A stretch of 63,599 nucleotides of DNA, filler included, from Pelomyxa schiedti (Eukaryota; Protista; Evosea): NCBI GenBank assembly GCA_020536535.1. It is 9 parts of 9 records of this genome, joined end to end, with 100 filler letters (N's around TTAATTAATTAA, not from the genome) between each part and the next. Parts side by side here need not be neighbours in the genome. Positions count along the whole stretch, not along the records: positions 1 to 13,759 come from JAHLWZ010001185.1; 8 more parts are not named here. One strand, written 5' to 3'. The position numbers and the translations under genes are program-made. The notes below the pieces were generated by a model. The model had not been told where the DNA came from, made no database searches, and was given only the letters and a program-made list of their open reading frames with translations. Below are positions 1-12,721 of the stretch, in pieces (position 1 is the stretch's first letter; every line of letters starts with the position of its first letter).

Positions 1-373
1 AGGCACGGGAATTGCAACACACATCATGGACGGTGCAGTGGATATATTTCGAGTATCTGATGCGCTGTTCTGTGTGTCAGTCCGAACAAACAGGCTGCAT
101 GAATGGTTCCAAATCCGTCACCGTGACAGGCCCACCAAGTCAGAGAATTATCTTGAGGGACTCAATCACAGCAAGGAAAACAAAGGGAAACACGTGAGGA
201 GGTTCTTGGCAGAGTCTGGGTTCATCTTCAATGTGTTTGCCAACAATGTGGCCGTCATTGAGCCAACCACAGGGCTGTTTGTCCTCACAATGAGATTTGC
301 TCGGTACAGCTCAATCGACATCACCACACCCTTCTCCTGTCATCTCTTCACCCAATCAGAGGGAGGTATTTAG
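1..373 (+). CDS. 3' part of an HPRCG-box family protein (5' end outside the window), near-identical paralog of 7875-9230
   Basis: Matches 8858-9230 at all but 8 of 373 nt; encodes the family C-terminus ...FLAESGFIFNVFANNVAVIEPTTGLFVLTM... Confidence 0.8.
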   Translation, partial: GTGIATHIMDGAVDIFRVSDALFCVSVRTNRLHEWFQIRHRDRPTKSENYLEGLNHSKENKGKHVRRFLAESGFIFNVFANNVAVIEPTTGLFVLTMRFARYSSIDITTPFSCHLFTQSEGGI

Positions 374-882
374 TGATTTGAGAGATATGCTTTTGCCATC
401 AAAAAAGACCCAGCTTGAAATAGCACATACGTGAATGCAATCACATTTTCAGTGGTGAACAGTGTAAGAGTTGATGTATCGTTTCTTAGTTCCTTTTCTA
501 CCTGGGTGGCAAAGGTTAGTTTGGCTTGGCACACTAGTGATTCCCTCAGTCCCCGGGCTCCACGACAACGGCCCCTGCTGGTACCGGGGCGTCCTGCATC
601 AGAGCCTGCAGCACGCTGCAAGACAGGTCCCAGCCTTGCTGGTCACCATCTGTCACATGGTTTTGACATGGGTCATGCAAAAGGAAATCAAGTTCACGGA
701 AATCTAGATTCGTTACCAGCCTGACAATCTTTTGTTGCAGTGATCCAGGTGGCTGCCTTTGTTACCAGTCTTCCTGGCTATTGCTCCATGCATAGGGGTG
801 GGTGTAGCAACTGATGCAGGCACTTGGTTTTTTTTTAATGTAGTTGGAGATTCCAGTCCCATGATTGAAAAAACACCAAAGA

Positions 883-2100
883 TCAATGCCACCAAAAGGA
901 GGATGGGGTGGCGATGCTTAGATGCTGGAAACCAGGGCAATTGATGACAAGGATAACGCACCCTGATGTTGGCTCAATCACTTCGATGATGGTGGAAAAC
1001 GAGTTGAAGATGAACCCTGACTCGGCTGTCACATGGAATCTCTTCCTTGAGGTGGATGTCAGCTGTCCAAGAGTCAGTGGATGTGCGGGGTTTTCTCGGT
1101 GATAGATGCTGAACGACTCTTGAAGGGTATTCCTGCAGCAGGACACACAGAACAGGGAATCGGACAACCGAAACACATCTTCCACGTTCTTGGACTGGAT
1201 CACAGTTGGTTTGGGGGAGATTGCTGCCTCTGGGAAGTGCAGAATCTCGAACCTCAGCCGATTCCAGGAGAGCTTCACCAGGAAAGTGCGTGACCCATAA
1301 GCGGGAGAAAACAGGTCATCCCAGTTCCTCATCACCACCACAGAGTAGAAGTTGTGCTGCTCCGAGGGGAACTCGCACCTCGTTGTGCTCAAAACAGCCA
1401 GCTTCTTGCTCTCACACGTCTCCTCCATGTCAACAACAACCACCACAACGCAGCTCTGAGTGACTTGAGCAACGACAACCTCACAGTCGACAGACTGGTC
1501 CACAAAGGCACGACAAGTGATGCACCCATTCACCATCGGCATGTCGACAACAACAGCACGTTCCACGTCACAGTGCGGTGCGCGGCCTGTGCTGATCGCC
1601 CCTCCCATAAGTGGAGCAACTGTAAGGCTGCCGCTGATCACCTCCTTTCCTCTTCTTACGAAGTTTCCCACCGATGCCACCCACTTGGTGTTGTAGGCGG
1701 TGCTGTCATCTCGAATCTGATTGTGGGAGGAGGGGCTGCTTGCCCACAACGGCAGGGCCTTGTACACTGGGCTGAAATCGAGTGGGGGCACAGATGACGG
1801 CTCACGAAAAATGCTCATCAGCAGGGGTGACAGGGCGAAGGAAACAGCGACCTCCTTCTGCCTGAGTGCCCCGTCGCGGAGGGCCAATCCACACACATCC
1901 AGCACGAAAAGCCTGATTGTGGGAAGGACGACGTCGAACCACAGGATGCGGAGGAACGACGACGCGTGGTCCCGTCCCATAACTCTCTGCATGGGGCTGT
2001 TGGCACCACACCGATTCACCGTCGCTCCTGCTGCGAGTGCTCCAAGTTGGCCTCGGGTTGTGATGGCGCCGGTTGGGCGTGTAGCGTTCTCTGTGTACAT
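883..2100 (-). CDS. HPRCG-box family protein, intronless, 405 aa
   Basis: N-terminal TTRGQLGALAAGATVNRCGANSPMQRVMG...LWFDVVLPTIRLFV; C-terminal AESGFIF..VIEPTSG shared with 7875-9230 and 11291-12721. Confidence 0.8.
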   Translation of the reverse strand: MYTENATRPTGAITTRGQLGALAAGATVNRCGANSPMQRVMGRDHASSFLRILWFDVVLPTIRLFVLDVCGLALRDGALRQKEVAVSFALSPLLMSIFREPSSVPPLDFSPVYKALPLWASSPSSHNQIRDDSTAYNTKWVASVGNFVRRGKEVISGSLTVAPLMGGAISTGRAPHCDVERAVVVDMPMVNGCITCRAFVDQSVDCEVVVAQVTQSCVVVVVVDMEETCESKKLAVLSTTRCEFPSEQHNFYSVVVMRNWDDLFSPAYGSRTFLVKLSWNRLRFEILHFPEAAISPKPTVIQSKNVEDVFRLSDSLFCVSCCRNTLQESFSIYHRENPAHPLTLGQLTSTSRKRFHVTAESGFIFNSFSTIIEVIEPTSGCVILVINCPGFQHLSIATPSSFWWH

Positions 2101-2255
2101 CTGTACAGTTTCCAGTTGTTATCTGATTTAGTGTATCTCCAACCTGTAGGTTTGGGAGTAATCTCCCTGTGGTATCATACCACTGGTACGTGACAGAAAA
2201 ACTCAGGGGATTGATTCTCTGGCTCAGTAAAATTTTTGGCTTTTAAAAGAAACGT

Positions 2256-3900
2256 TCACCTTTTCCACCAATGCTTTTTGGTCTTTGCTTCATGAGTCTT
2301 CACAGTTGCTTTAGCACCAGTCTTCACAGCCACTTTAGGTTTCCTATGACCCTTGACGAAAGGTTTCATATCCACCTTGACGTCAGGTTTCATATCAACC
2401 TTGACGTCAGGTTTCATATCCACCTTGACGTCAGGTTTCATATCACCCTTGACGAAAGGTTTCATATCCACCTTGACGTCAGGTTTCATATCAACCTTGG
2501 CCTTTCTCACCATACCCCCAGATTTTGATGATGAAGATGAGAATGAAAGCTTTGGAAGTCCAATACCTATCTTGAGTCCTCTGTTTCCTTTCCCAGAGCC
2601 AGATTTGGATTCAGAAGAAGACTTTGACTTGCTGCCAGTTTGAGGAATCTTGACACACAGTGCCTTGGAGTCAACCTTGACATCAGCAATGTTGGTTTTG
2701 GGTGGCTGGTGGTAAGTGTATCGCACTGATGCAAAGTTGTTGTTGAGTACCTGCCTGAGTGCCTGGGTGTTGACGTGGTGCATGACATTTTTTGCTGAGA
2801 GGCATGGTGTCATTGCTCCTGATGATGTGAGCTGTGTGCACTCAGAAAGTGTTTCCTTCAGCTTCTTGTCTGCGGCAATAAGGCTCACTACGTCGTTGGA
2901 CTTGGCGATTTCATGTGCTATGGTGATTGTTCTTTTGTGTGTTGACATGCACACCTCGAGGCACTCTTTGTGTTCTTTCAGGTGTGACTCTGTGTTGTTC
3001 GTTGGTTGGTTGAGTTTCAAAACTGAATTGGTGGGAATGGGATTGGTATACCAATCAAAGATGAAAGCAAAGTGCAGTCTGCAACCACATCGTGGAGATT
3101 CTGTTTAATGGAATGTAAGATTGCCTCCTTCTCTGACTCAACGTTGGAGGTGATTGAGTGAAGCAACTGTTCAGACTCCAAAATGGAAGCCTCACATTTT
3201 TTTATTGCTTCACTTTCAAGTGCAACTGATTCTACAAGTTTGGAAGTCGCACCTGCATGCAAAACAATTGGCTTCTTTCTTTCTTTTTGAGCAAGGTAAA
3301 AAGTACACACTCAAGAGTGATTCACGGATCTGAGAGGTAACTTCATCAAGTGGGACACACTTGTGAGCTGAGTGCGCTGAACTGAATGCGCACAGTGCAC
3401 ATATCGGTTCCCTCTCCTCCAAACAGAACAGATCGAGGTCCTTCTTTGGGTGTTTGGGGCACATGTGTTCCTCAGTCAAAACTGGTGACATGGGTATCGG
3501 CTGGCCCTTGTTGTGAGGTTGGAGGGGAAATCAAATTTGATTCAAAAAAAAGAGGCACACCTTGTGGGACTTGATTCCAGGTGCTTTATGACGGATGTGG
3601 AAGCACGACTCACAGAACAACATCCCTTTGCACCGCAGGCAAGTCAACGTCGCTTTCTTGGCAACTGAGTTCTCATCAATGCAATACCCAAGCTGCACAT
3701 ATTTCTGTGTTGCGCACGTGGACAGAGATGCCGATGACACCGACTGTGGGGCGCATCCAGGCAATGCAGCAAGTGTTGCCACGGACGCTATGTGGTTGTA
3801 GCACCCACGGCAAACCAGGTGCCCACATGATCCCGACTGCGACGCCGAGGCCGTGGAGGTGGTTGTTGTTGCTATTGTTGTTGTTGTTGTGGTGGTGGTG
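2256..3900 (-). CDS. TRIM-like tandem B-box/coiled-coil protein with a C-terminal 8-aa repeat tail; multi-exon, start codon unresolved
   Basis: CGHLVCRGC (half RING); B-box ATLTCLRCKGMLFCESCFHIRH..H; B-box CPKHPKKDLDLFCLEEREPICALCAFSSAHSAH; coiled coil; GT-AG introns join ORFs 3531-4100, 3216-3491, 3017-3310 and 2256-3020. Confidence 0.7.
2351..2500. repeat. Coding 24-bp tandem repeat, about 6 copies (DVKVDMKP / FVKGDMKP on the minus strand)
   Basis: Unit ccttgacgtcaggtttcatatc(c/a)a is directly visible, with variant ccttgacgaaaggtttcatatcca. Confidence 0.95.
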
Positions 3901-4683
3901 GTGGCGGCGGTGGTAGCAGTTGTGGGTTTGTTTCCAGGCACCTGGTGAGTGCCAGGTCGTTCTGTAGTTAGGTATCGGTTTCTTTGTTCATTGTTTTTAA
4001 TTTTATTTAGTGTTGTCAGTCTTTTGTTGTTGCCGACAGTGTACCCCTGTTCCTCTTGCGTCTGCTGTTGTTTCCTCGGTTTTGTTTTGTTTTTCCCCAA
4101 ACTGTTGAAGCAACGCTTCAGTCAATTCTTTTTGTTTTGCTTTGTCTCGTGTTTTTTAAGCTTCGTTTAGCTAGTTAGTCTTGTTTTTATTCTTGTTCTC
4201 ACATCAACACAGGAGGAGAAGGGGCACAGCAGTATGTTTCCATTTCTCTTCTCTGCTTTTCTTTTTCGACTTCTCACATGTGAAAACCAGGTGGTGGTTG
4301 TAGACGTCAGCGGAATGTGTTTGCAGCAAACCGGTATTTCCTCGCCTCCCATCCTGTATTTTTTTTTTTTCATTCAACTTGTGTTGAAATGGGTCTTCTG
4401 TTATCCTCCTTTTTTTTCTTTTTCGATTTCTGCGGCATCCAAGACAGACTTGAACTGCAGGTATCTTCTCCATTTTTCGTTTTCGATTTCTCACTTTATA
4501 ACAGGTAGAACTGTCAGGCTGCTGCGAAAGACAAGTTCGCTTCCTTTTTTTTTTTTTGACTTTTTCTCCAAGGTACATTCCCTTTTTATTATCACCCCAC
4601 TCAACAACAACAGGACCCTGGATGGGCTGACGAACTGAGTGCCATGTCAGGCTTTACTTCCGCCTCCACCCACTTCACTAACA

Positions 4684-4745
4684 CTCCCGCTCTCCCGCTC
4701 TCCCGCTCTCCCGCTCTCCCGCTCTCCCGCTCTCCCGCTCTCCCG
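4684..4745. repeat. 8-bp tandem repeat (CTCCCGCT)n, about 7.5 copies
   Basis: Directly visible between two divergent genes. Confidence 0.95.
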
Positions 4746-4974
4746 TGCTCTTCCAATTTTCTTGGAATAAACTGCTGTAACTGGGCTCAGCCGCAAGCTC
4801 AGTGGCTAACGCGATTTTTGGTTGGAAACAATGTGCAAAGTGATGAAGACGACGGGTGCTCCGACTCGTCACAGCTCTCCCAGCTTACACGGTTGGTCTC
4901 TTCCGGTAATGGAATTGTTTTCGACTTGGGTTTTGTTTACTCTTCCCTTTGAAAAAAAAATAAGAACAACCAAC

Positions 4975-7545
4975 ATGTTGGGTGCTGAGTACACTAGCGA
5001 TTACGACGGCTACCAAGACGATGATGCCGTAGCAGCTGTTTTATTCATCCACGACCACAACAACAAATCCGACGATCTTCTGCAGAAAATAGGAACCGTC
5101 GTGTCGCAAGCTGGGGGCTGTGGTGTTCTCCAAAAATGCTCAGAGTACCAGGCTGAAATAGAGGCCACACTGCTTTCGATGCTTGATCCTCTAATTGGGT
5201 GTGAACGTGGACTGTCTTATCGGGCTGTGTGCACCATCGTCGAAAATTTCTGGCTGTATATGTGTGATATTGGCCAAAGCCCTGAATTCTTGTGGAAGAA
5301 AAAGGAGATTGTGGGAGTGGGTGTGACTGATGGAATGAGTCACGGTCACAGGCGACACTTTGACTTGGTGGCTTGTGCTTGTGCAAATAAAATAGTCGAT
5401 TCCTTCATTTCAGAGTTTGAGGTGCTCTATGACATGATGCCTGCATATGTTGGGCCGTTCATGGGAAGGTTGTTTGAGATGGCTTCAAGGGACCTGCATC
5501 AGAGTCTGGCTCCACATTGCACAGCTTTGAAAAAGTCAATAGTAATTCTGAAGAAGTTGATGTGGGTTCCACACTGCAGGCACTTGTTCATTCCATTTGC
5601 AAACCAACTGCAGGTGATTCTAGACCATGTCAGAACGGAACTACTAGATAATTCAACGAATGAAATGCTCACCTGCTGTGTGAACCTTGTTTCAGTTCTG
5701 CCTCAGTTTGTTCAAGATTTCTGCAATTCCTATCTCTCTAGAGCCGTAAAAGACATTGGCATACTTCGGAGATGGGTGTGGGGATGGGACATATTACCCG
5801 TTTGGACCACAGAGGATGTTGTTGATTTTCTCAAGCAAAGGAATATTACATTCCACCTTATCACAAGCCTGCTCCAGGCTTGTTGTAAGGAAGAAAGTCC
5901 TTCAATTTCATTGACCATGTTCTTGAAGTGGGGTTTCCTAGCTGATACTGTACTATCCAACTTCATCGAGGAAATTCTTCCCATGTTTGGCATGCTATGC
6001 TCTGTGGATCCACAGAATGGGCACAAGGGTATTCTCCAGTTTGTTGAGGATCACATTGAAAGAAGCAACTTGGTTCTCAAGTCTTATTCAGCATTGATGC
6101 TAATTCCAGTGATTTTCACAGGAGGAGCCGTTGATGAAAACGTTTTGATGAAGGCCCTCATGTTTGCATGCTCTGATGGTTCACCACCAATTCTTGAAGT
6201 TCTGTTCTCATTGAAGGAAGTGTTTGACATGGTGACTTCCACAGGCGCAATTGAACTCTTGTTTGAGAAGGCATTGGAGAGGCACAACAAAGGGAGTGAT
6301 GGGTTGCTGTTTCAGATGTTGAAGCTCTGTGCTGTTCGAGTCAGAAATCTTCTTTTCAGAAACGCAACTGTGGAATTCATTACACCAATTCAAAACAGCC
6401 AAGAAGCAGAAGCACCCAGAAAACGGCCCTTGGAAGAAAGGACAAGGAATTATGTTAGTGTGCTTGAGGTTTATTATTCACGCCAAAATGTGGAGACTTT
6501 CAACAGGGGCCTCTCATTTACAGTGGCAGTGTCATCCATTCATTTGGAACCAGACAGTGTCAATTACTGCTTTCTTTTGGTGGCGGCATCAGCACACATC
6601 GTTGGTTCCCAAAGATTTGGTGATTCTAACCTCTGTGATTCCTCACACTTCACCAACCTCATGACACAGTGCTGTTATTACTCGCCAAGTATGATTGAGG
6701 AGAATGAAGAAGTTGTTCTGTCTCTTCTGAGGAATGTCACTGACAGAAGGGCATTCATGCAAGAAATCCTTTACAAGTGCAAGAGAAATTCCGACATGGA
6801 ACAGAAGTGGTGCCCTCTGCTGAGTGCAGTGTTGTTCAGCGAAATCCAGCCGCTTATTCCAACAGAGCCAAGGAAGTTGCCTCGTGCGCTTTCTAATGTT
6901 GAACAGTCCAGTGGAGGTCAGGATAACATCCAGCAACTTATCCTTCAGTGGCCCTCAATCACTGACTGCTTTGACAATGTTCTGCGGTGGCTGTTGACTA
7001 CTGGTGGCAGTTCATCTACATTGACAAGGCTCTTCATGGTGTGGCCAGTGGACCCAACAAAGGTAACCTTTGAAGTCTTGGGTGAAAAACAATCAGTGAC
7101 ACAGTGGGCAATGAAGTCAGGAGATTTTGGTTTGATTCGGCAGCTTCTCCCGTTGTGTAAACCAGGACACATTCCATCTAGTCTCATTGTTGACGCAGTT
7201 GAACGTGGCTTCCGTGGCATTGCTGATTTGCTGTTGTGCCATGGTGTGTGCATTCCTGAATCTACGCTGAATGATGGGAGCACACTGAAAATCCAAGGAC
7301 AACCAGTTGATGCGCATCACCCAAGTGTGTGGCGGTTCTTCAACAGCACACCAAAGTGGGATCCTCAACAACACCGACGGTTCCCGTGGTGGTTCAAGGT
7401 TCACATCCTCAAGACTGTTCTCCTCTGTTGGCTCCACAGTGCCACATCTGAATCAGGATATCAACAGGGGCATTTTATTGGAAGGTTGTCACAAGCCAAT
7501 GTGCACCACATTCTTTCATTCCTTTCCCCTGTCCATTGGCACTGA
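4975..7545 (+). CDS. Large intronless helical protein (about 856 aa) with ankyrin-like repeats and a C-terminal WxPxxHxxFP...L..ILSFL box
   Basis: Uninterrupted ORF 4822-7545; ATG 4975 follows an A-rich leader; WAMKSGDFGLIRQLL and AVERGFRGIADLLLCHG are ankyrin-like. Confidence 0.7.
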   Translation: MLGAEYTSDYDGYQDDDAVAAVLFIHDHNNKSDDLLQKIGTVVSQAGGCGVLQKCSEYQAEIEATLLSMLDPLIGCERGLSYRAVCTIVENFWLYMCDIGQSPEFLWKKKEIVGVGVTDGMSHGHRRHFDLVACACANKIVDSFISEFEVLYDMMPAYVGPFMGRLFEMASRDLHQSLAPHCTALKKSIVILKKLMWVPHCRHLFIPFANQLQVILDHVRTELLDNSTNEMLTCCVNLVSVLPQFVQDFCNSYLSRAVKDIGILRRWVWGWDILPVWTTEDVVDFLKQRNITFHLITSLLQACCKEESPSISLTMFLKWGFLADTVLSNFIEEILPMFGMLCSVDPQNGHKGILQFVEDHIERSNLVLKSYSALMLIPVIFTGGAVDENVLMKALMFACSDGSPPILEVLFSLKEVFDMVTSTGAIELLFEKALERHNKGSDGLLFQMLKLCAVRVRNLLFRNATVEFITPIQNSQEAEAPRKRPLEERTRNYVSVLEVYYSRQNVETFNRGLSFTVAVSSIHLEPDSVNYCFLLVAASAHIVGSQRFGDSNLCDSSHFTNLMTQCCYYSPSMIEENEEVVLSLLRNVTDRRAFMQEILYKCKRNSDMEQKWCPLLSAVLFSEIQPLIPTEPRKLPRALSNVEQSSGGQDNIQQLILQWPSITDCFDNVLRWLLTTGGSSSTLTRLFMVWPVDPTKVTFEVLGEKQSVTQWAMKSGDFGLIRQLLPLCKPGHIPSSLIVDAVERGFRGIADLLLCHGVCIPESTLNDGSTLKIQGQPVDAHHPSVWRFFNSTPKWDPQQHRRFPWWFKVHILKTVLLCWLHSATSESGYQQGHFIGRLSQANVHHILSFLSPVHWH

Positions 7546-7874
7546 TAATACACTGATAGGTAGTACACTGATCCTTTTTATTTCTATCTCAGCACCAAAT
7601 TTCCTTGTTAATTTGTACAATTCATAGACCAAGGGTGGGATGGTTAGAGAATGGCGAGACGTTTTTCCCTTTCACAGCCGTGGGTCAGTTTGTTGCCCTT
7701 ACGTCGTCGTCGCACCCTCGTTGTGGTGCGTGCACGCATCATCTGCTGCGTGGGCCTGGGAGAACTTGGTGCCCGAACGACGTGGCATTGCCTGGTCCCA
7801 TAACTCGTTTGTTGAAGTTGTTGCCATCATCAGAACGTTCTGTTCCCAGAATCGAAAAACACGACGTTTCGTTT

Positions 7875-9230
7875 ATGGCCACGTGGAGAGTCGCAGATGC
7901 TACGGGCACTGCGGACATTGAAGCAACCATCACCACGCGCAGCCAACTTGGCGGGCTCGCAGCGGGCGCTACGATCGAGCGGTGCGGAGGAGCCAGCGCG
8001 ATGCAGCGAGTTATGGGACTCGGCCCCGCCACCTCGTTCGTCCGCGCGCTGTGGCGCGACCTGGTGCGTCCCACAATCCGCTTCTTCGTCGTCCAAGTGT
8101 ACGCGTACGACCGAGGTGCCAGCACGAGGTGCCGCTTCCCCAGCGTCTTCAGCGTCTGCTTCAGCCTCTCCCCTCTTCTCCTCAGCGTCTCCTCGGCCCC
8201 CGGCCCCGCGCTGCTCCCCATCTGTTTCACCAGGTGGGTCGACGCCACCCGCATAGCACTGGACTCCAAGGCGCACGAGGGCCGCTTCGTTCTCGCCATC
8301 AAGAACACGGGCACAGGCTCCGAGGTCACGTGCGTGCGCGGGCCCCCGAGTTCCGCCGCCGAGCACGGCCACGAATTTTCCGTGAACGCCAAGTGGGCGG
8401 CCGTAGTGAGGTATGACAGAAGGGGTGAAAGCACAGAACATCCCACGTTGACAGTGGCTGGGATAAAGAAGAAGGAGGGAGAGGCTACCACCGCTGCTGC
8501 TGCTGCTGGTGGCCAGAAATGTGTTGTTGTGGAGATGCCTGTGGTGGACTGCTGCGAGTGCCCGTACTGTGCACGGCAGGTGCAGATGTTCGCGGACCAG
8601 CATGCTGAGAGCCAGGTTGTTGTGACTCACTCGAGAAAGGACGGCTCTGTCACCTCCATTTTCGTTGTTGACCTGGAGGAGACATATGACAGCGGGAGCC
8701 TGGCCCTTGTGAGCACAACAACCTGTGTCTTGCCGACCTCGTTTGAGTCTCTGATTGTGCTCAGGAACCCACGTAGTGGCAGCTCCCACAACCAACGCAC
8801 CTTCATTGTCAGAACGTGCAAGAGCAAATGGACCTTTGGTGTGTGGCACGTGGAGGAAGGCACGGGAATTGCAACACACATCATGGACGGTGCAGTGGAT
8901 ATATTTCGAGTATCTGATGCGCTGTTCTGTGTGTCAGTCCGAACAAACAGGCTGCATGAATGGTTCCAAATCCGTCACTGTGACAGGCCCACCAAGTCAG
9001 AGAATTATCTTGAGGGACTCAATCACAGCAAGGAAAACAAAGGGAAACACATGAGGAGGTTCTTGGCAGAGTCTGGGTTCATCTTCAATGTGTTTGCCAA
9101 CAACGTGTCCGTCATTGAGCCAACAACAGGGCTGTTTGTCCTCACAATGAGATTTGCTCGGTACGGCTCCATCGACATCACCACACCCTTCTCCTGTCAT
9201 CTCTTCACCCAATCAGAGGGAGGTATTTAA
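7875..9230 (+). CDS. HPRCG-box family protein, intronless, about 451 aa
   Basis: First in-frame ATG of ORF 7605-9230; TTRSQLGGLAAGATIERCGGASAMQRVMG...LWRDLVRPTIRFFV; internal NAKW, VVDLEETY and AESGFIF motifs. Confidence 0.8.
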   Translation: MATWRVADATGTADIEATITTRSQLGGLAAGATIERCGGASAMQRVMGLGPATSFVRALWRDLVRPTIRFFVVQVYAYDRGASTRCRFPSVFSVCFSLSPLLLSVSSAPGPALLPICFTRWVDATRIALDSKAHEGRFVLAIKNTGTGSEVTCVRGPPSSAAEHGHEFSVNAKWAAVVRYDRRGESTEHPTLTVAGIKKKEGEATTAAAAAGGQKCVVVEMPVVDCCECPYCARQVQMFADQHAESQVVVTHSRKDGSVTSIFVVDLEETYDSGSLALVSTTTCVLPTSFESLIVLRNPRSGSSHNQRTFIVRTCKSKWTFGVWHVEEGTGIATHIMDGAVDIFRVSDALFCVSVRTNRLHEWFQIRHCDRPTKSENYLEGLNHSKENKGKHMRRFLAESGFIFNVFANNVSVIEPTTGLFVLTMRFARYGSIDITTPFSCHLFTQSEGGI

Positions 9231-9707
9231 AAAAAATTCCCCCCTTCGTTATTTCTGGGTTTCGTTCTGAATGTCGTGTGTGACCATGCTTTTGTTGTTG
9301 GCGGGAGAAAAACGGGGAGTGTGGCCTCGATCACGGTGGTGTGACAGCGTGGTTTGGGTGTCAGGACAAGTCCACCACGTTCTGGGGTGTGACGTCTATT
9401 AAAGTCACTGCAACACGACAGTAATGTGCCTCAACACAAATGTGCACCTCATCACCAACACACACTCATGATTTTCTCTGACATCATCCGTCGTCACGAG
9501 GGAGCACGCACTACAAAGTGTACACAGTTTGTGCATGCTCCACATCAGCATCGCTGTAACTTCGTTCAACGTCCTCTTCGTCAAAGAAGTGATCACAATT
9601 TTCTTCTGTTAGAGGCAGGTGAACTGATGCCATCAGTTCTACTAAACGACTACACAAACAGAACAAAAAAAATCCCTTTCTCTCACCCCATTCCTCACCC
9701 CAAACTG

Positions 9708-11231
9708 ATGTGTGGTCTTCTTCTTTCGTCGCTATCATCACAACAAACAACCACACCAAGCAACAGCAGCGATGCTCCAATGTGTGCGTCATCACAACCG
9801 GCGTCATCGTCACCATCTGTTGTGAGCGCAACAGTCGTCGTGTGGGCACGTGATCAAATGGCCGCACTGGCTGCAGGGACACACCCGCGGTGTGGGGCAC
9901 GCAGCTCGGTCGGAATTATGGGATCGTCGCTGCTCGAGCTGATGTATCGCATTTGCTGTGGTGACCCAGAGATATCAGTTGCGCCACAACCTGGAAACAG
10001 CGAATTATGGGGCTCCCCTGTGGTGACTCTGTGTGTTGGTGTTTATGCCAGGCCATTGAGCAGTACTACTGGGACTGGAGCTGTGCCCACTGATGTGATA
10101 AGAATCGATGTGTCTGCTCCTTTGCTTGGTGTCATCAGTGTGAGGATGCTGGACCACAGGAAGAGCCTTGTATTTCCGGATACTGAAGAAAGGGGTCTTT
10201 CTCCAAGTGCTGCGCGTCTAAGGCAGAATTGCGAGTGTGAGAGGTGGGACCTTGTTGGCCCGAATGGGGAGTGTGTCATCAAGAAGCCCAATACAAACGG
10301 TACAACTGTAGGCACCTTCTACTTCCTCCCTGCTCCTCCTTTTATTATCGTGGACAGTGATTACAATCAGTCCAACAACTCTCCTGATGAGGATGGCTTT
10401 GACGGTCCCATGTTTTTGTTTGAAGAATCTTACAGCACATCTTGTGCTGGGTGCCACACTGGAAACACAAAGTGGTGGGCGTGGTGTGATGGGGAGGATC
10501 TGTGTTTGCTGGAGATTGCTGAGAGAATTGCCATGAGGAATGGAAATGAGCTTAAACAAACATCAATCAGTACCGAGGAAACCAAGAGCTTGTGGTCGAT
10601 TCTCTTGGCAATTCCACAGATTCACGTTGATGAGGATGATGACCACTGGGTGGTGCAGCTTTTCGTAAGTGAAGTGAATCCCAATGAGCTGGTGATTGCA
10701 GCAGTTGCCCGTTCCACTCTTTTCCTTGTTATTGATGTCACACACACCCTCAAGACTGGGAATCTCACTGTTGTCAGCAGAACCACCTGTGCCATAACCA
10801 GTACTTCAGATGGCAGAGATTATGTGTCAGCAATCATGTGCAGGCAGAAATCAGGTCAGAGAGTGTTTGTTGTGCGGGCACACGGTTGCACCAGAGCGTT
10901 CTCTGATGTTCACCAAGTGGATGAGACCACAGGTGTGAAAAAACTGGTGACTAACGGTGTGATGCAGCTCTGCCATCTCACACCATCATTGTTCTGCACG
11001 TCACATCACTCACCTCCTCAGTGCATGTCCTGTCACATTTGGGACTGCAATGACACAACTAGGCCTGTGTTGGTTGTGGGGCCTGTTGAGGGTTGCACCC
11101 ATGTTGAATCTGCGTGTGGCCTCTTGCTTTTCAACAGCAACACCCAAATCAGGGTTGTTGATGCCCTCACTGGTGTTGAACTTGCCACATTCGATGTTCC
11201 TTCCTCATTCTCACTGATGCTCAAGCCCTGA
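9708..11231 (+). CDS. HPRCG-box family protein (different subfamily), intronless; start is 9708 or 9780
   Basis: WARDQMAALAAGTHPRCGARSSV; NTKWW, VIDVTHT, HIWDCND and GLLLF..IRVVDALTG motifs. Confidence 0.8.
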   Translation: MCGLLLSSLSSQQTTTPSNSSDAPMCASSQPASSSPSVVSATVVVWARDQMAALAAGTHPRCGARSSVGIMGSSLLELMYRICCGDPEISVAPQPGNSELWGSPVVTLCVGVYARPLSSTTGTGAVPTDVIRIDVSAPLLGVISVRMLDHRKSLVFPDTEERGLSPSAARLRQNCECERWDLVGPNGECVIKKPNTNGTTVGTFYFLPAPPFIIVDSDYNQSNNSPDEDGFDGPMFLFEESYSTSCAGCHTGNTKWWAWCDGEDLCLLEIAERIAMRNGNELKQTSISTEETKSLWSILLAIPQIHVDEDDDHWVVQLFVSEVNPNELVIAAVARSTLFLVIDVTHTLKTGNLTVVSRTTCAITSTSDGRDYVSAIMCRQKSGQRVFVVRAHGCTRAFSDVHQVDETTGVKKLVTNGVMQLCHLTPSLFCTSHHSPPQCMSCHIWDCNDTTRPVLVVGPVEGCTHVESACGLLLFNSNTQIRVVDALTGVELATFDVPSSFSLMLKP

Positions 11232-11290
11232 TCAGCCCCTCTTACCCAAAAATTTGGAAAAGGAAAACCAGGAAAAAAGTACTTTTTTTT

Positions 11291-12721
11291 TCAATGCAAG
11301 AAACCAGAGGAGGGTGTGACGAGGGTGACTGGAGAGAAAGCAGGAAAATTGAGGGTGAGGAGAACGAACCCTGATCTTGGTTCAATCACATCAACCATGT
11401 TGGCAGACATTTGGAAGATGAATCCAGATTCTGCCATGAACCTCCTCATACTTTTGCTGGTGTGCGGGGCCTGTGCCTTGTTGTTGTGGCTTGGGAGATT
11501 TTGAAGAAGATTCAGAGGGTGTGTGAGGTCGTCAGTGTGATAGAACTTGACGAAATCCCAATCTTTGTTTGTGCGGAATGACACACAGAGCAGTGAGTCA
11601 GACACCACAAACACATCATCCACGTGGGAGAACATGTGTGTGGAAACGCCTGTTGATTCCTCAACTCGGAACACCGCGTTGTTGTGGAAATTCTTCCTGG
11701 AATGGCTACTTCTTCTCCCGGCAGTCTTCACAAGGAAGGAGCGTGTTTCAGTGGAACAAGGATTCCAGTCGTTCCTCATCACAACGAGTCTGTTGAATGG
11801 GGCACTAAATTCACAGCTCGTTGTGCTCAGCAGAACCAGGCTTCTGTCGTTGAAGGTCTTCTCCATGTCAACGACAAAGATGACTGTTTTGTTCTCAGGG
11901 GAGAGCTGATCTGTGATTGCAACAACAACCTCGGATTCGACACGCTTGTCCATAAACAATTGGACGAGGCAGTAACCAAATGACTCGTGTGCACCTGGCA
12001 TTGCCACAGAAACACCGCTCTGCTGCTGGTGCTCCTGAGTGTTGTTCTTCACGCCGCCAATGAACTTTGTGTCACCACCACCACCAAGATTGCCGCCACA
12101 AATCGGGATGGGCGCAACAGTCAACACCATTGGCCTCGTACCACGATCAAAGAAGTAGGCCCAGGAAGCGTACGGATCTGCCGTTGGCCTCACCACCATG
12201 GCAACCCACCTGCTGTTGGCCTGCCACTCGCACACAGTGTGGCCCGGGGGGCTCCTCAAGGCCTCCGCGGCGGCGCCGGTGCCCGCGTCCACGGCCCCCA
12301 GCACGCAGCAGTCGGTCCCGTGCTGGTGCCGCGGAACCACGCCGACGAAGAGGCGGCTGCTGGCCCACTGGGTCCTGTGCTCCCAGCTGGGGCGCACCGG
12401 CGCCGGGGCGGGGCTGCGGGCGACGCTCAGGAGCAGCGGGGAGACCGCGAAGGAGACGGCCGCCGTGTCCTCCTTCCACCAGCGCCAGCGGGACTGCGCG
12501 TGGCGCGAGGGGATCCCGTCGACCTCGAGGACGAAGAACCGGAGGGTGGGGCGGACCCAGTCGGACCACAGCAGGCGGACGAGCGAGGCGGCGTGGCCGC
12601 GTCCCATAACTCTCTGCATCGCGCTGCCGCCGCCGCACCGCTCGATCGTCGCCCCCGCCGCGAGCGCGCCGAGTTGGTCGCGCGTCGTGGTGGTCATTGC
12701 GGTGACGGAAACGCCACTCAT
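11291..12721 (-). CDS. HPRCG-box family protein, intronless, 476 aa
   Basis: TTRDQLGALAAGATIERCGGGSAMQRVMG...LWSDWVRPTLRFFV; NSRW, VVDMEKT and AESGFIF..VIEPRSG motifs. Confidence 0.8.
   Translation of the reverse strand: MSGVSVTAMTTTTRDQLGALAAGATIERCGGGSAMQRVMGRGHAASLVRLLWSDWVRPTLRFFVLEVDGIPSRHAQSRWRWWKEDTAAVSFAVSPLLLSVARSPAPAPVRPSWEHRTQWASSRLFVGVVPRHQHGTDCCVLGAVDAGTGAAAEALRSPPGHTVCEWQANSRWVAMVVRPTADPYASWAYFFDRGTRPMVLTVAPIPICGGNLGGGGDTKFIGGVKNNTQEHQQQSGVSVAMPGAHESFGYCLVQLFMDKRVESEVVVAITDQLSPENKTVIFVVDMEKTFNDRSLVLLSTTSCEFSAPFNRLVVMRNDWNPCSTETRSFLVKTAGRRSSHSRKNFHNNAVFRVEESTGVSTHMFSHVDDVFVVSDSLLCVSFRTNKDWDFVKFYHTDDLTHPLNLLQNLPSHNNKAQAPHTSKSMRRFMAESGFIFQMSANMVDVIEPRSGFVLLTLNFPAFSPVTLVTPSSGFLH

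Follow-up and report, generated by a model that had tools for sequence, protein, structure and literature searches.

A single-exon gene family in Pelomyxa schiedti couples a conserved HPRCG box to a variable, predicted seven-bladed beta-propeller

The first 12.7 kb of a 63,599-nucleotide window (the whole stretch of Pelomyxa schiedti DNA analysed here, nine parts joined end to end) is crowded with related intron-free genes, raising the question of what these genes encode, and whether their products are ubiquitin-ligase substrate adaptors, as an earlier note on this DNA suggested. Four complete single-exon members of the family, called here the HPRCG family after its box, are found in this region along with one C-terminal fragment and one box remnant. 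The five members that the earlier note listed are all in place, with that at 1–373 being the C-terminal end of a member truncated at the edge of the contig. The features, in order along the window, are as follows.

2–373, plus strand: C-terminal family fragment, 123 codons and a stop, with its 5′ part beyond the contig edge
883–2100, minus strand: member A, 405 aa, single ORF, GATVNRCG-type box at ~1894–2082
2256–3623, minus strand: B-box/coiled-coil (TRIM-like) gene, intron-bearing, non-family context, stop TGA at 2256–2258
7677–7733, plus strand: HPRCG box remnant AVGQFVALTSSSHPRCGAC, read from the translation of ORF 7605–9230
7875–9230, plus strand: member B, 451 aa, single ORF, GATIERCG-type box at ~7926–8103
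9708–11231, plus strand: member C, 507 aa, true HPRCG-type box R48–G63 at ~9849–9896
11291–12721, minus strand: member D, 476 aa, GATIERCG-type box at 12521–12706, basis of the structure model

The window members align over their full length at 21–45% identity, with three of the four complete members belonging to a derived GAT(I/V)xRCG subfamily, and member C to a divergent subfamily whose proteins begin MCGL. The box remnant lies upstream of member B in the same frame, with no propeller after it. Family members are single uninterrupted ORFs, as had been claimed, whereas the published P. schiedti genome carries 7.43 introns per gene, and the neighbouring B-box gene, with more exons upstream to ~4100, contains short GT-AG introns. 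A second intron-free multi-copy ORF, representing a 907-aa family, adjoins HPRCG family members in the window; this linkage was not found in the flanks of 50 other HPRCG family loci.

The members share an N-terminal box of the form RxQxxALxxG..(HP/IE/VN)RCGxxS followed by LW...V.P, with NxKW, VVDxExT, and AESGFIF..VIEPxSG in the region behind it, and WDCN in more distant members, and each of the motifs named previously (the box, LW...V.P, NxKW, VxDxExT, ESGFIF, and WDCN) was thereby recovered. Family-wide, the box most often takes the HPRCG form (51 of 146 sampled boxes), within a consensus read as ALxxSSHPRCG, and Q, R-C-G, and W each occur in 90% or more of a set of 73 diverse boxes. Column entropy rises from 1.47 in the box to 2.2 in the propeller strands and 2.35 in the propeller loops. 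The earlier remark that no named domain could be recognised holds, with no recurrent Pfam match among full-length members or isolated boxes, and with no Pfam family matched by the box. The Pfam WD40 repeat signature likewise matched no member, the SOCS_box profile matched neither members nor isolated boxes, and no recognisable signal peptide was found in the family proteins. Searches with the box itself returned no matches from a sequence-profile search of the PDB, and no usable match from a language-model search of the ESM Atlas.

The family is large, well in excess of chance, in agreement with the lineage-specific expansion proposed for it. A profile search of the genome found 104 places among 94 scored candidates, drawn from 1026 first-look candidates, and 480 protein clusters matched the family profile at E ≤ 1e-3 (350 at E ≤ 1e-10), equivalent to ~2.4% of the 19,876 proteins in the predicted proteome. 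A genome search with a box profile, as the earlier note had proposed, matched all 150 scored candidates from 1648 first-look candidates. A back-translated HPRCG coding pattern occurs 477 times in the genome, compared with 45 occurrences of a control pattern, and the genome therefore probably holds about 1,000 family copies, an extrapolated figure that is best read as hundreds to about a thousand. All 20 sampled family matches are from P. schiedti, and word-index protein searches gave P. schiedti alone, whether started from a single member, a set of 46 diverse members, or the isolated box. Scans of metagenomes and viral contigs found no relatives. The family thus appears confined to P. schiedti at the level of detectable sequence similarity. 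No paper describing the HPRCG motif or family was found in the literature, the term “gene family” is absent from the P. schiedti genome paper, and the family would seem to be previously undescribed.

The variable region behind the box had been read as a beta-propeller, and the AlphaFold2 model of full-length member D (pLDDT 81, pTM 0.83), together with its structural matches, agrees with this reading. In the model the box occupies residues 13–59 and the propeller residues 60–475, with seven four-stranded blades predicted around a central axis. Structural comparison of residues 60–475, of the kind suggested in the earlier note, gave matches to many unrelated seven-bladed propellers (Z of 14–16 over 260–310 residues), including prolyl-oligopeptidase, amine-dehydrogenase, Sec12, BtuG, and WD40 propellers. 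The box is predicted to form a module of ~50 residues comprising a helix, the conserved loop (S)HPRCGxxSP, a short helix, and a long helix ending in LW..WV, and it retains a confident prediction when modelled alone (pLDDT 84.6). The isolated box model gave no Foldseek matches and a best VIA match of Z 3.8, small helical domains being hard to match.

Near-identical, distant, and stop-disrupted copies are present together, bearing out the birth-and-death evolution proposed for the family. Positions 1–372 and 8858–9229 are 98.1% identical, with the similarity stopping at the end of the ORF, whilst distant copies share ~20% identity, and broken copies include those with internal stops at C1270, C3083, and C1908 as well as the box remnant at 7677–7733. 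These observations support growth of the family by local and tandem duplication, and loss of copies to truncation and stop codons. Weak purifying selection acts on the coding regions of the family, with dN/dS of 0.33–0.67 in nine of nine independent recent pairs, and the comparison of box and C-terminal region that had been called for gives a pooled pN/pS of 0.31–0.45 for the box against 0.63–0.66 for the propeller. A whole-gene dN/dS of ~0.6 is also compatible with a partly dispensable family under relaxed constraint. We are nearly certain of the overall description, that of a single-exon family of ~430–480 aa proteins with a conserved HPRCG box and a far more variable seven-bladed propeller, turned over by duplication and decay.

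Several of these features would also be expected of a selfish or near-neutral expansion, in which the genes are the ORF of an unrecognised mobile element or a swarm of retrocopies doing little for the cell. The genes are intron-free in an intron-rich genome (7.43 per gene), the copies number on the order of 1,000, dN/dS is high (~0.6), GC3 is 0.74–0.56 in the family versus 0.40–0.50 in neighbouring genes, the duplication between 1–372 and 8858–9229 stops exactly at the stop codon, fragments and broken copies are numerous, and a second intron-free multi-copy ORF lies alongside. However, copies down to 20% identity retain intact ORFs of 400–500 codons, dN/dS is below 1 in all nine independent pairs, no member carries a reverse-transcriptase, integrase, or transposase domain, the window copies lack flanking terminal repeats, and the neighbouring 907-aa family is unlinked to the 50 other family loci, making such an expansion improbable. 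A mobile-element or viral origin was rejected as the main reading, given the absence of element domains and flanking repeats, dN/dS values under 1, and the location of the copies among genes of the host.

If the family serves the cell, its architecture suggests a division of labour, in which the conserved box would dock all members onto one shared cellular partner, and the diversified propellers would bind differing ligands, such that the family would constitute a repertoire of interchangeable recognition subunits. Docking onto a common partner, argued by analogy with known systems, is a realistic possibility, to which we give slightly less than an even chance, and the more specific proposal that this partner is a ubiquitin ligase is doubtful. 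A cullin-RING ubiquitin ligase is nevertheless the leading candidate partner, because known families combining a box with a propeller work in this manner. The genome encodes several cullins and an RSE1/DDB1-type propeller protein. The box may instead cap the propeller of its own chain. If it acts as a structural cap or a dimerisation element, the family would consist of cytosolic binding proteins or scaffolds that stand alone, such as lectin-like or pattern-recognition proteins, with no ligase involved. The whole-chain pTM of 0.83 suggests one rigid body, the near-invariant Cys, often with a His three residues earlier, might take part in a metal site or disulfide between molecules, and N-terminal extensions are common among propellers. 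However, a confident fold is predicted for the box in isolation (pLDDT 84.6), and the box is far more conserved than the propeller strands against which it would pack, an uncommon pattern if so variable a domain carried a purely structural cap; we consider a cap or dimerisation element unlikely.

Amongst docking modules, the F-box offers a close comparison in layout, with the F-box/WD40 and F-box/Kelch receptors of SCF ligases also pairing a short conserved N-terminal helical module with a variable beta-propeller, and also showing large lineage-specific expansions, fast evolution, and pseudogenes. The box could accordingly be a divergent F-box, or a SOCS/BC-box, binding Skp1 or Elongin C, with the family acting as SCF- or ECS-type substrate receptors in a genome that has an SCF system (at least 126 F-boxes and several cullins). 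An F-box is found in one of the ESM Atlas clusters close to the model (TM 0.49), and FBXW8 ranks 19 among the Foldseek propeller matches, however both are generic propeller matches. The HPRCG box lacks sequence or profile likeness to F-boxes, no likeness to them was seen in its predicted fold, and the family lacks a linker domain. The F-box HMM (PF00646) did not match any of the 36 full-length members or 73 isolated boxes at E ≤ 10, none of the at least 126 canonical F-box matches that the Pfam model finds in the genome falls at a family locus, and hhalign of 124 boxes against 15 F-boxes from the same genome gave a probability of 0.08% over 4 aligned columns. No F-box, SOCS-box, or BTB structure appears among the best 50 matches to the isolated box model (best Z 3.8), although such an absence carries little weight for a domain so small and helical. 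A BC-box is further disfavoured by the Leu–Cys spacing, which is 8–9 residues in ALxxSSHPRCG compared with 4 in (S/T/P)LxxxCxxx(A/I/L/V). The F-box or SOCS/BC-box reading is thus very improbable, and the earlier proposal of a divergent F-box or cullin-adaptor motif finds no support in the profile, hhalign, and structural comparisons. Judged from profiles and models, the box is a putative new module rather than an F-box, SOCS-box, or BTB domain.

A similar arrangement is found in the DCAF receptors of CRL4 such as DDB2 and CSA, in which a helix-loop-helix stands directly ahead of a seven-bladed propeller, and a DCAF-like box would insert into a DDB1-type adaptor. In DCAF structures a helix passes directly into the propeller with no linker domain, and in our model the last helix of the box (residues 41–59) likewise leads directly into the first strand (residues 61–71), in an organism whose genome has a strong RSE1/DDB1-type propeller gene and several cullins. 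This likeness is one of layout, however, and the Pfam WD40 signature is unmatched, no DDB2 or CSA chain or other specific structural match appears among the best 50, and a genome typically has few DCAFs, which are shared throughout eukaryotes, in contrast to a huge family in one organism. We regard a DCAF-like role as rather improbable. The BTB/WD-repeat paralogues of giant viruses, such as mimivirus R739, also resemble the family in joining an adaptor domain to a propeller, in their many paralogues, and in their amoebal setting, and such proteins are among the BFVD propeller matches, which are generic (TM 0.3–0.4). Unlike these proteins, the family carries a box that is not a BTB domain, yielded no relatives in the viral contigs scanned, and has its copies among intron-bearing host genes.

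P. schiedti and its bacterial and archaeal endosymbionts form an obligate consortium. Given this consortium, the handling of symbionts or prey is an obvious role to propose for a huge and diversifying family of cytosolic binding proteins, with an antiviral or anti-symbiont role being speculation. The most far-reaching form of the docking proposal, in which the HPRCG box is a docking module new to science for a hub protein such as a cullin adaptor, defining a new class of substrate receptor, and the ~1,000 fast-evolving propellers form an intracellular recognition repertoire for endosymbionts, prey, or viruses, is quite unlikely as a whole. Were the repertoire reading correct, approximately one in 40 predicted P. 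schiedti proteins would belong to a single undescribed family with the build of a recognition repertoire, and the box would count as a new protein-interaction module deserving structural and binding work.

The public gene models give one member a different architecture. The annotation merges member A with the upstream B-box gene on the same strand (PF22586, E = 5e-8) into protein P0008, named TRIM39, and under this model the propeller would serve as the recognition domain in a TRIM-like ligase, TRIM proteins comprising a RING, B-box, coiled coil, and C-terminal recognition domain. However, the B-box gene ends at the stop codon at 2256–2258, between the B-box and member A, member A begins with an ATG of its own, a 23-nt micro-exon is needed for the join, and neither a B-box nor a RING was present in any of 10 longer family proteins scanned. 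Public gene models for the HPRCG family are often wrongly fused or spliced, distorting gene counts and orthology analyses of the P. schiedti genome. Two gene models in the window other than P0008 are clearly mis-joined or mis-spliced, and the annotation merges member B with member C (P0018).

The contig at the start of the window holds several intron-free genes of one Pelomyxa schiedti family, in which a conserved N-terminal "HPRCG" box of ~50 residues precedes a variable beta-propeller, with the ORF list giving uninterrupted frames precisely where the earlier note had placed them. The features of this contig are as follows.

2-373 (+), family fragment, frame continuing off the contig edge
883-2100 (-), member A, 405 aa, uninterrupted frame
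2256-4100 (-), TRIM-like gene interrupted by introns, encoding an ANCHR-like B-box (E 5e-8) and a coiled coil
4822-7545 (+), uninterrupted ORF of 907 aa from a second intron-free multi-copy family
7677-7733 (+), orphan HPRCG box remnant AVGQFVALTSSSHPRCGAC, upstream of member B and in the same frame
7875-9230 (+), member B, 451 aa from the ATG chosen in the earlier note, uninterrupted frame
9708-11231 (+), member C, 507 aa, uninterrupted frame
11291-12721 (-), member D, 476 aa, uninterrupted frame

The five window copies can be aligned along their full length, as can dozens of other genomic copies, and all of the motifs named previously were recovered in the alignments (the N-terminal box, LW..V.P, NxKW, VVDxExT, and AESGFIF..VIEPxSG), with WDCN seen in more distant family members. 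The start of member C at 9708 is supported by related copies elsewhere, which also begin MCGL. The remnant at 7677-7733 looks like a leftover from a copy that was deleted or recombined; unlike this HPRCG remnant, the box of member B itself is of a derived form, GATIERCG.

The earlier note's proposal of an expanded family was correct and understated. In the 52.4-Mb, 5337-contig assembly, where the contig described here is C1185, a profile built from the five window copies recovered at least 104 genomic places (94 of 1026 first-look candidates scored), with an array of eight matches on contig C1023, and each of the 150 candidates scored from 1648 matched a profile of the box alone. The back-translated HPRCG pentapeptide occurs at 477 genomic sites, compared with 45 for a reversed control, with six same-strand coding sites spaced 2-6 kb apart on contig C21 (1726-19672, -), indicating a tandem array of family members. 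Of 146 boxes sampled, with a bias toward the non-HPRCG subfamily of the window, 51 had the HPRCG form, and extrapolation suggests roughly 800-1,300 box-bearing copies, fragments included. Searching 1.84 billion representative proteins with a 36-member profile returned 480 clusters at E<=1e-3, of which 350 remain at E<=1e-10 and 137 at E<=1e-30. The published draft lists 19,876 predicted proteins, with 7.43 introns per gene (PMC8887013), such that the 480 clusters alone correspond to ~2.4% of the predicted proteome, and the family is among the largest of the organism. All 20 of the listed hits whose species was looked up belong to P. schiedti, with the shortest hits placed among them as the likeliest metagenomic fragments. 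A word-index search with member D returned only P. schiedti proteins, including the annotated product of the same contig, while word searches with diverse members or the box alone found no relatives outside this species, nor did the JGI metagenome and IMG/VR scans find any. The family is apparently species- or genus-restricted, and weak relatives in other Archamoebae may lie within the tail of the 480 hits.

Glutamine, the R-C-G triplet, and one tryptophan each occur in 90% or more of 73 diverse boxes, the consensus of which is ARDQxxALxxxSHPRCGAxSPA....L.R.LW...V. Modelled alone with this alignment, the box is confidently predicted (pLDDT 84.6) to form a helix (8-20), an extended loop containing HPRCG..SP, a short helix (33-36), and a further helix (39-50). 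None of the 73 boxes matched Pfam, even at E<=10, in keeping with the earlier remark that no named domain could be recognised. The box likewise gave no match to the PDB by sequence profile, no hits to its model in Foldseek, and no usable match by protein-language-model search, with exhaustive VIA-align giving a best Z of 3.8 and no F-box, SOCS-box, or BTB chains in the top 50, although small helical domains of this kind are hard to match. The box had been proposed to be a divergent F-box; this identification is not supported, with hhalign of 124 boxes against 15 F-boxes of the same genome giving a probability of 0.08%, and none of the at least 126 canonical F-boxes found with the Pfam model lying at family loci. 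Given both the lack of a clear match in these searches and the lack of similarity to the genome's own F-boxes, the box should be treated as a new module.

The proposed beta-propeller, by contrast, is borne out by prediction. The AlphaFold2 model of member D, built with a 36-sequence alignment (pLDDT 81, pTM 0.83), comprises three helices (13-25, 34-39, and 41-59) and then 28 strands, with residues 60-475 superposing on seven-bladed propellers in Foldseek and VIA-align (Z 14-16 over 260-310 residues). The matches include prolyl oligopeptidase, aromatic amine and methylamine dehydrogenases, BtuG, Sec12, IFT, and WD40 proteins, and a viral structure library gave the same generic picture. As this list is flat across unrelated families, the modelled fold is a generic seven-bladed propeller of no identifiable superfamily, and Pfam WD40, Kelch, and other repeat models matched none of the members scanned. 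Ten longer annotated family proteins share no extra domain, indicating that the two-part architecture is the norm.

Across the genome, the reading frames that contain box matches stay open for about 400-560 codons, whereas cullin and DDB1-type genes are split into many exon-sized matches and the B-box gene adjoining member A has short GT-AG introns, upholding the intronless character claimed for the family. Public annotation of these genes is faulty. Annotated protein P0018 joins members B and C, deleting the C-terminus of B and the box of C, and P0001 lacks a 28-residue "intron" cut from member D, a segment that includes the family-wide conserved VFRVEESTG. Both are clear prediction errors, rendering doubtful the model P0008 (named TRIM39), in which member A is fused to the B-box/coiled-coil gene by taking the stop codon at 2256-2258 into a splice donor and adding a 23-nt micro-exon. 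The public models at 883-2258, 7875-11231, and 11291-12721 are unreliable, and much of the family is probably subject to similar errors, which distort protein counts.

Among 39 genomic copies analysed by the Nei-Gojobori method, nine independent recent pairs (dS 0.03-0.47) gave dN/dS values of 0.33-0.67; being below 1 in every pair, these indicate that the coding sequences are constrained, though only weakly. The suggested comparison of box and C-terminal region shows the box to be the more constrained (pooled pN/pS of 0.31-0.45 vs 0.63-0.66), with column entropies of 1.47 for the box, 2.2 for propeller strands, and 2.35 for propeller loops. Indels and low model confidence occur mainly at residues 181-240, 334-348, and 404-424. 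Synonymous divergence in deeper comparisons is also lower in the box (0.31 vs 0.51), a tendency only, as it holds in just five of the nine independent pairs. GC3 falls from 0.74 to 0.60 and 0.56 across gene thirds, 5' to 3' (neighbouring genes, 0.40-0.50; first third of member D, 0.95), and the boxes of B and D share 81% DNA identity over 178 nt (7926-8103 vs 12517-12694), despite proteins only about 41% identical. Together, these three observations hint at 5'-biased gene conversion. A 98.1% duplicate in the window, in which similarity stops precisely at the stop codon, the box remnant 5' of member B, and genomic copies with internal stops or truncations agree with the birth-and-death evolution proposed earlier.

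Of the earlier interpretation, the propeller and the birth-and-death evolution stand, whilst the F-box does not. The protein appears cytosolic, and hundreds of copies are maintained in which a small, strongly conserved N-terminal module is paired with a propeller that has diversified; we hypothesise that the box is a constant end that would dock onto one common partner, with the propeller as the variable end that would do the binding. The box may instead be a structural cap or dimerisation element, or the expansion may be largely selfish or near-neutral. The dock-and-binder arrangement is known from receptors that bring substrates to cullin-RING ligases. The family represents a new variant of the box-plus-propeller theme, with a box of unassigned type. 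Its modelled layout, in which the last helix leads directly into blade 1, recalls DCAF receptors no less than F-box proteins. The genome contains cullins, a DDB1-type gene, and many F-boxes, which is only a prerequisite for a ligase role.

The 907-aa ORF at 4822-7545 has no Pfam domain and 52 genomic matches, about ten of which are near full length (44-54% identity), and its family was not seen beside the other 50 HPRCG loci examined. The interval 4682-4746 lies inside a short ORF of Pro/Ser/Leu-rich repeats that does not belong to the HPRCG family. The TRIM-like gene contains a partial RING-like CGHxxCxxC stretch and, at its C-terminus, octapeptides of the DMKPDVKV type, encoded by seven tandem repeats of 24 nt (2308-2523).
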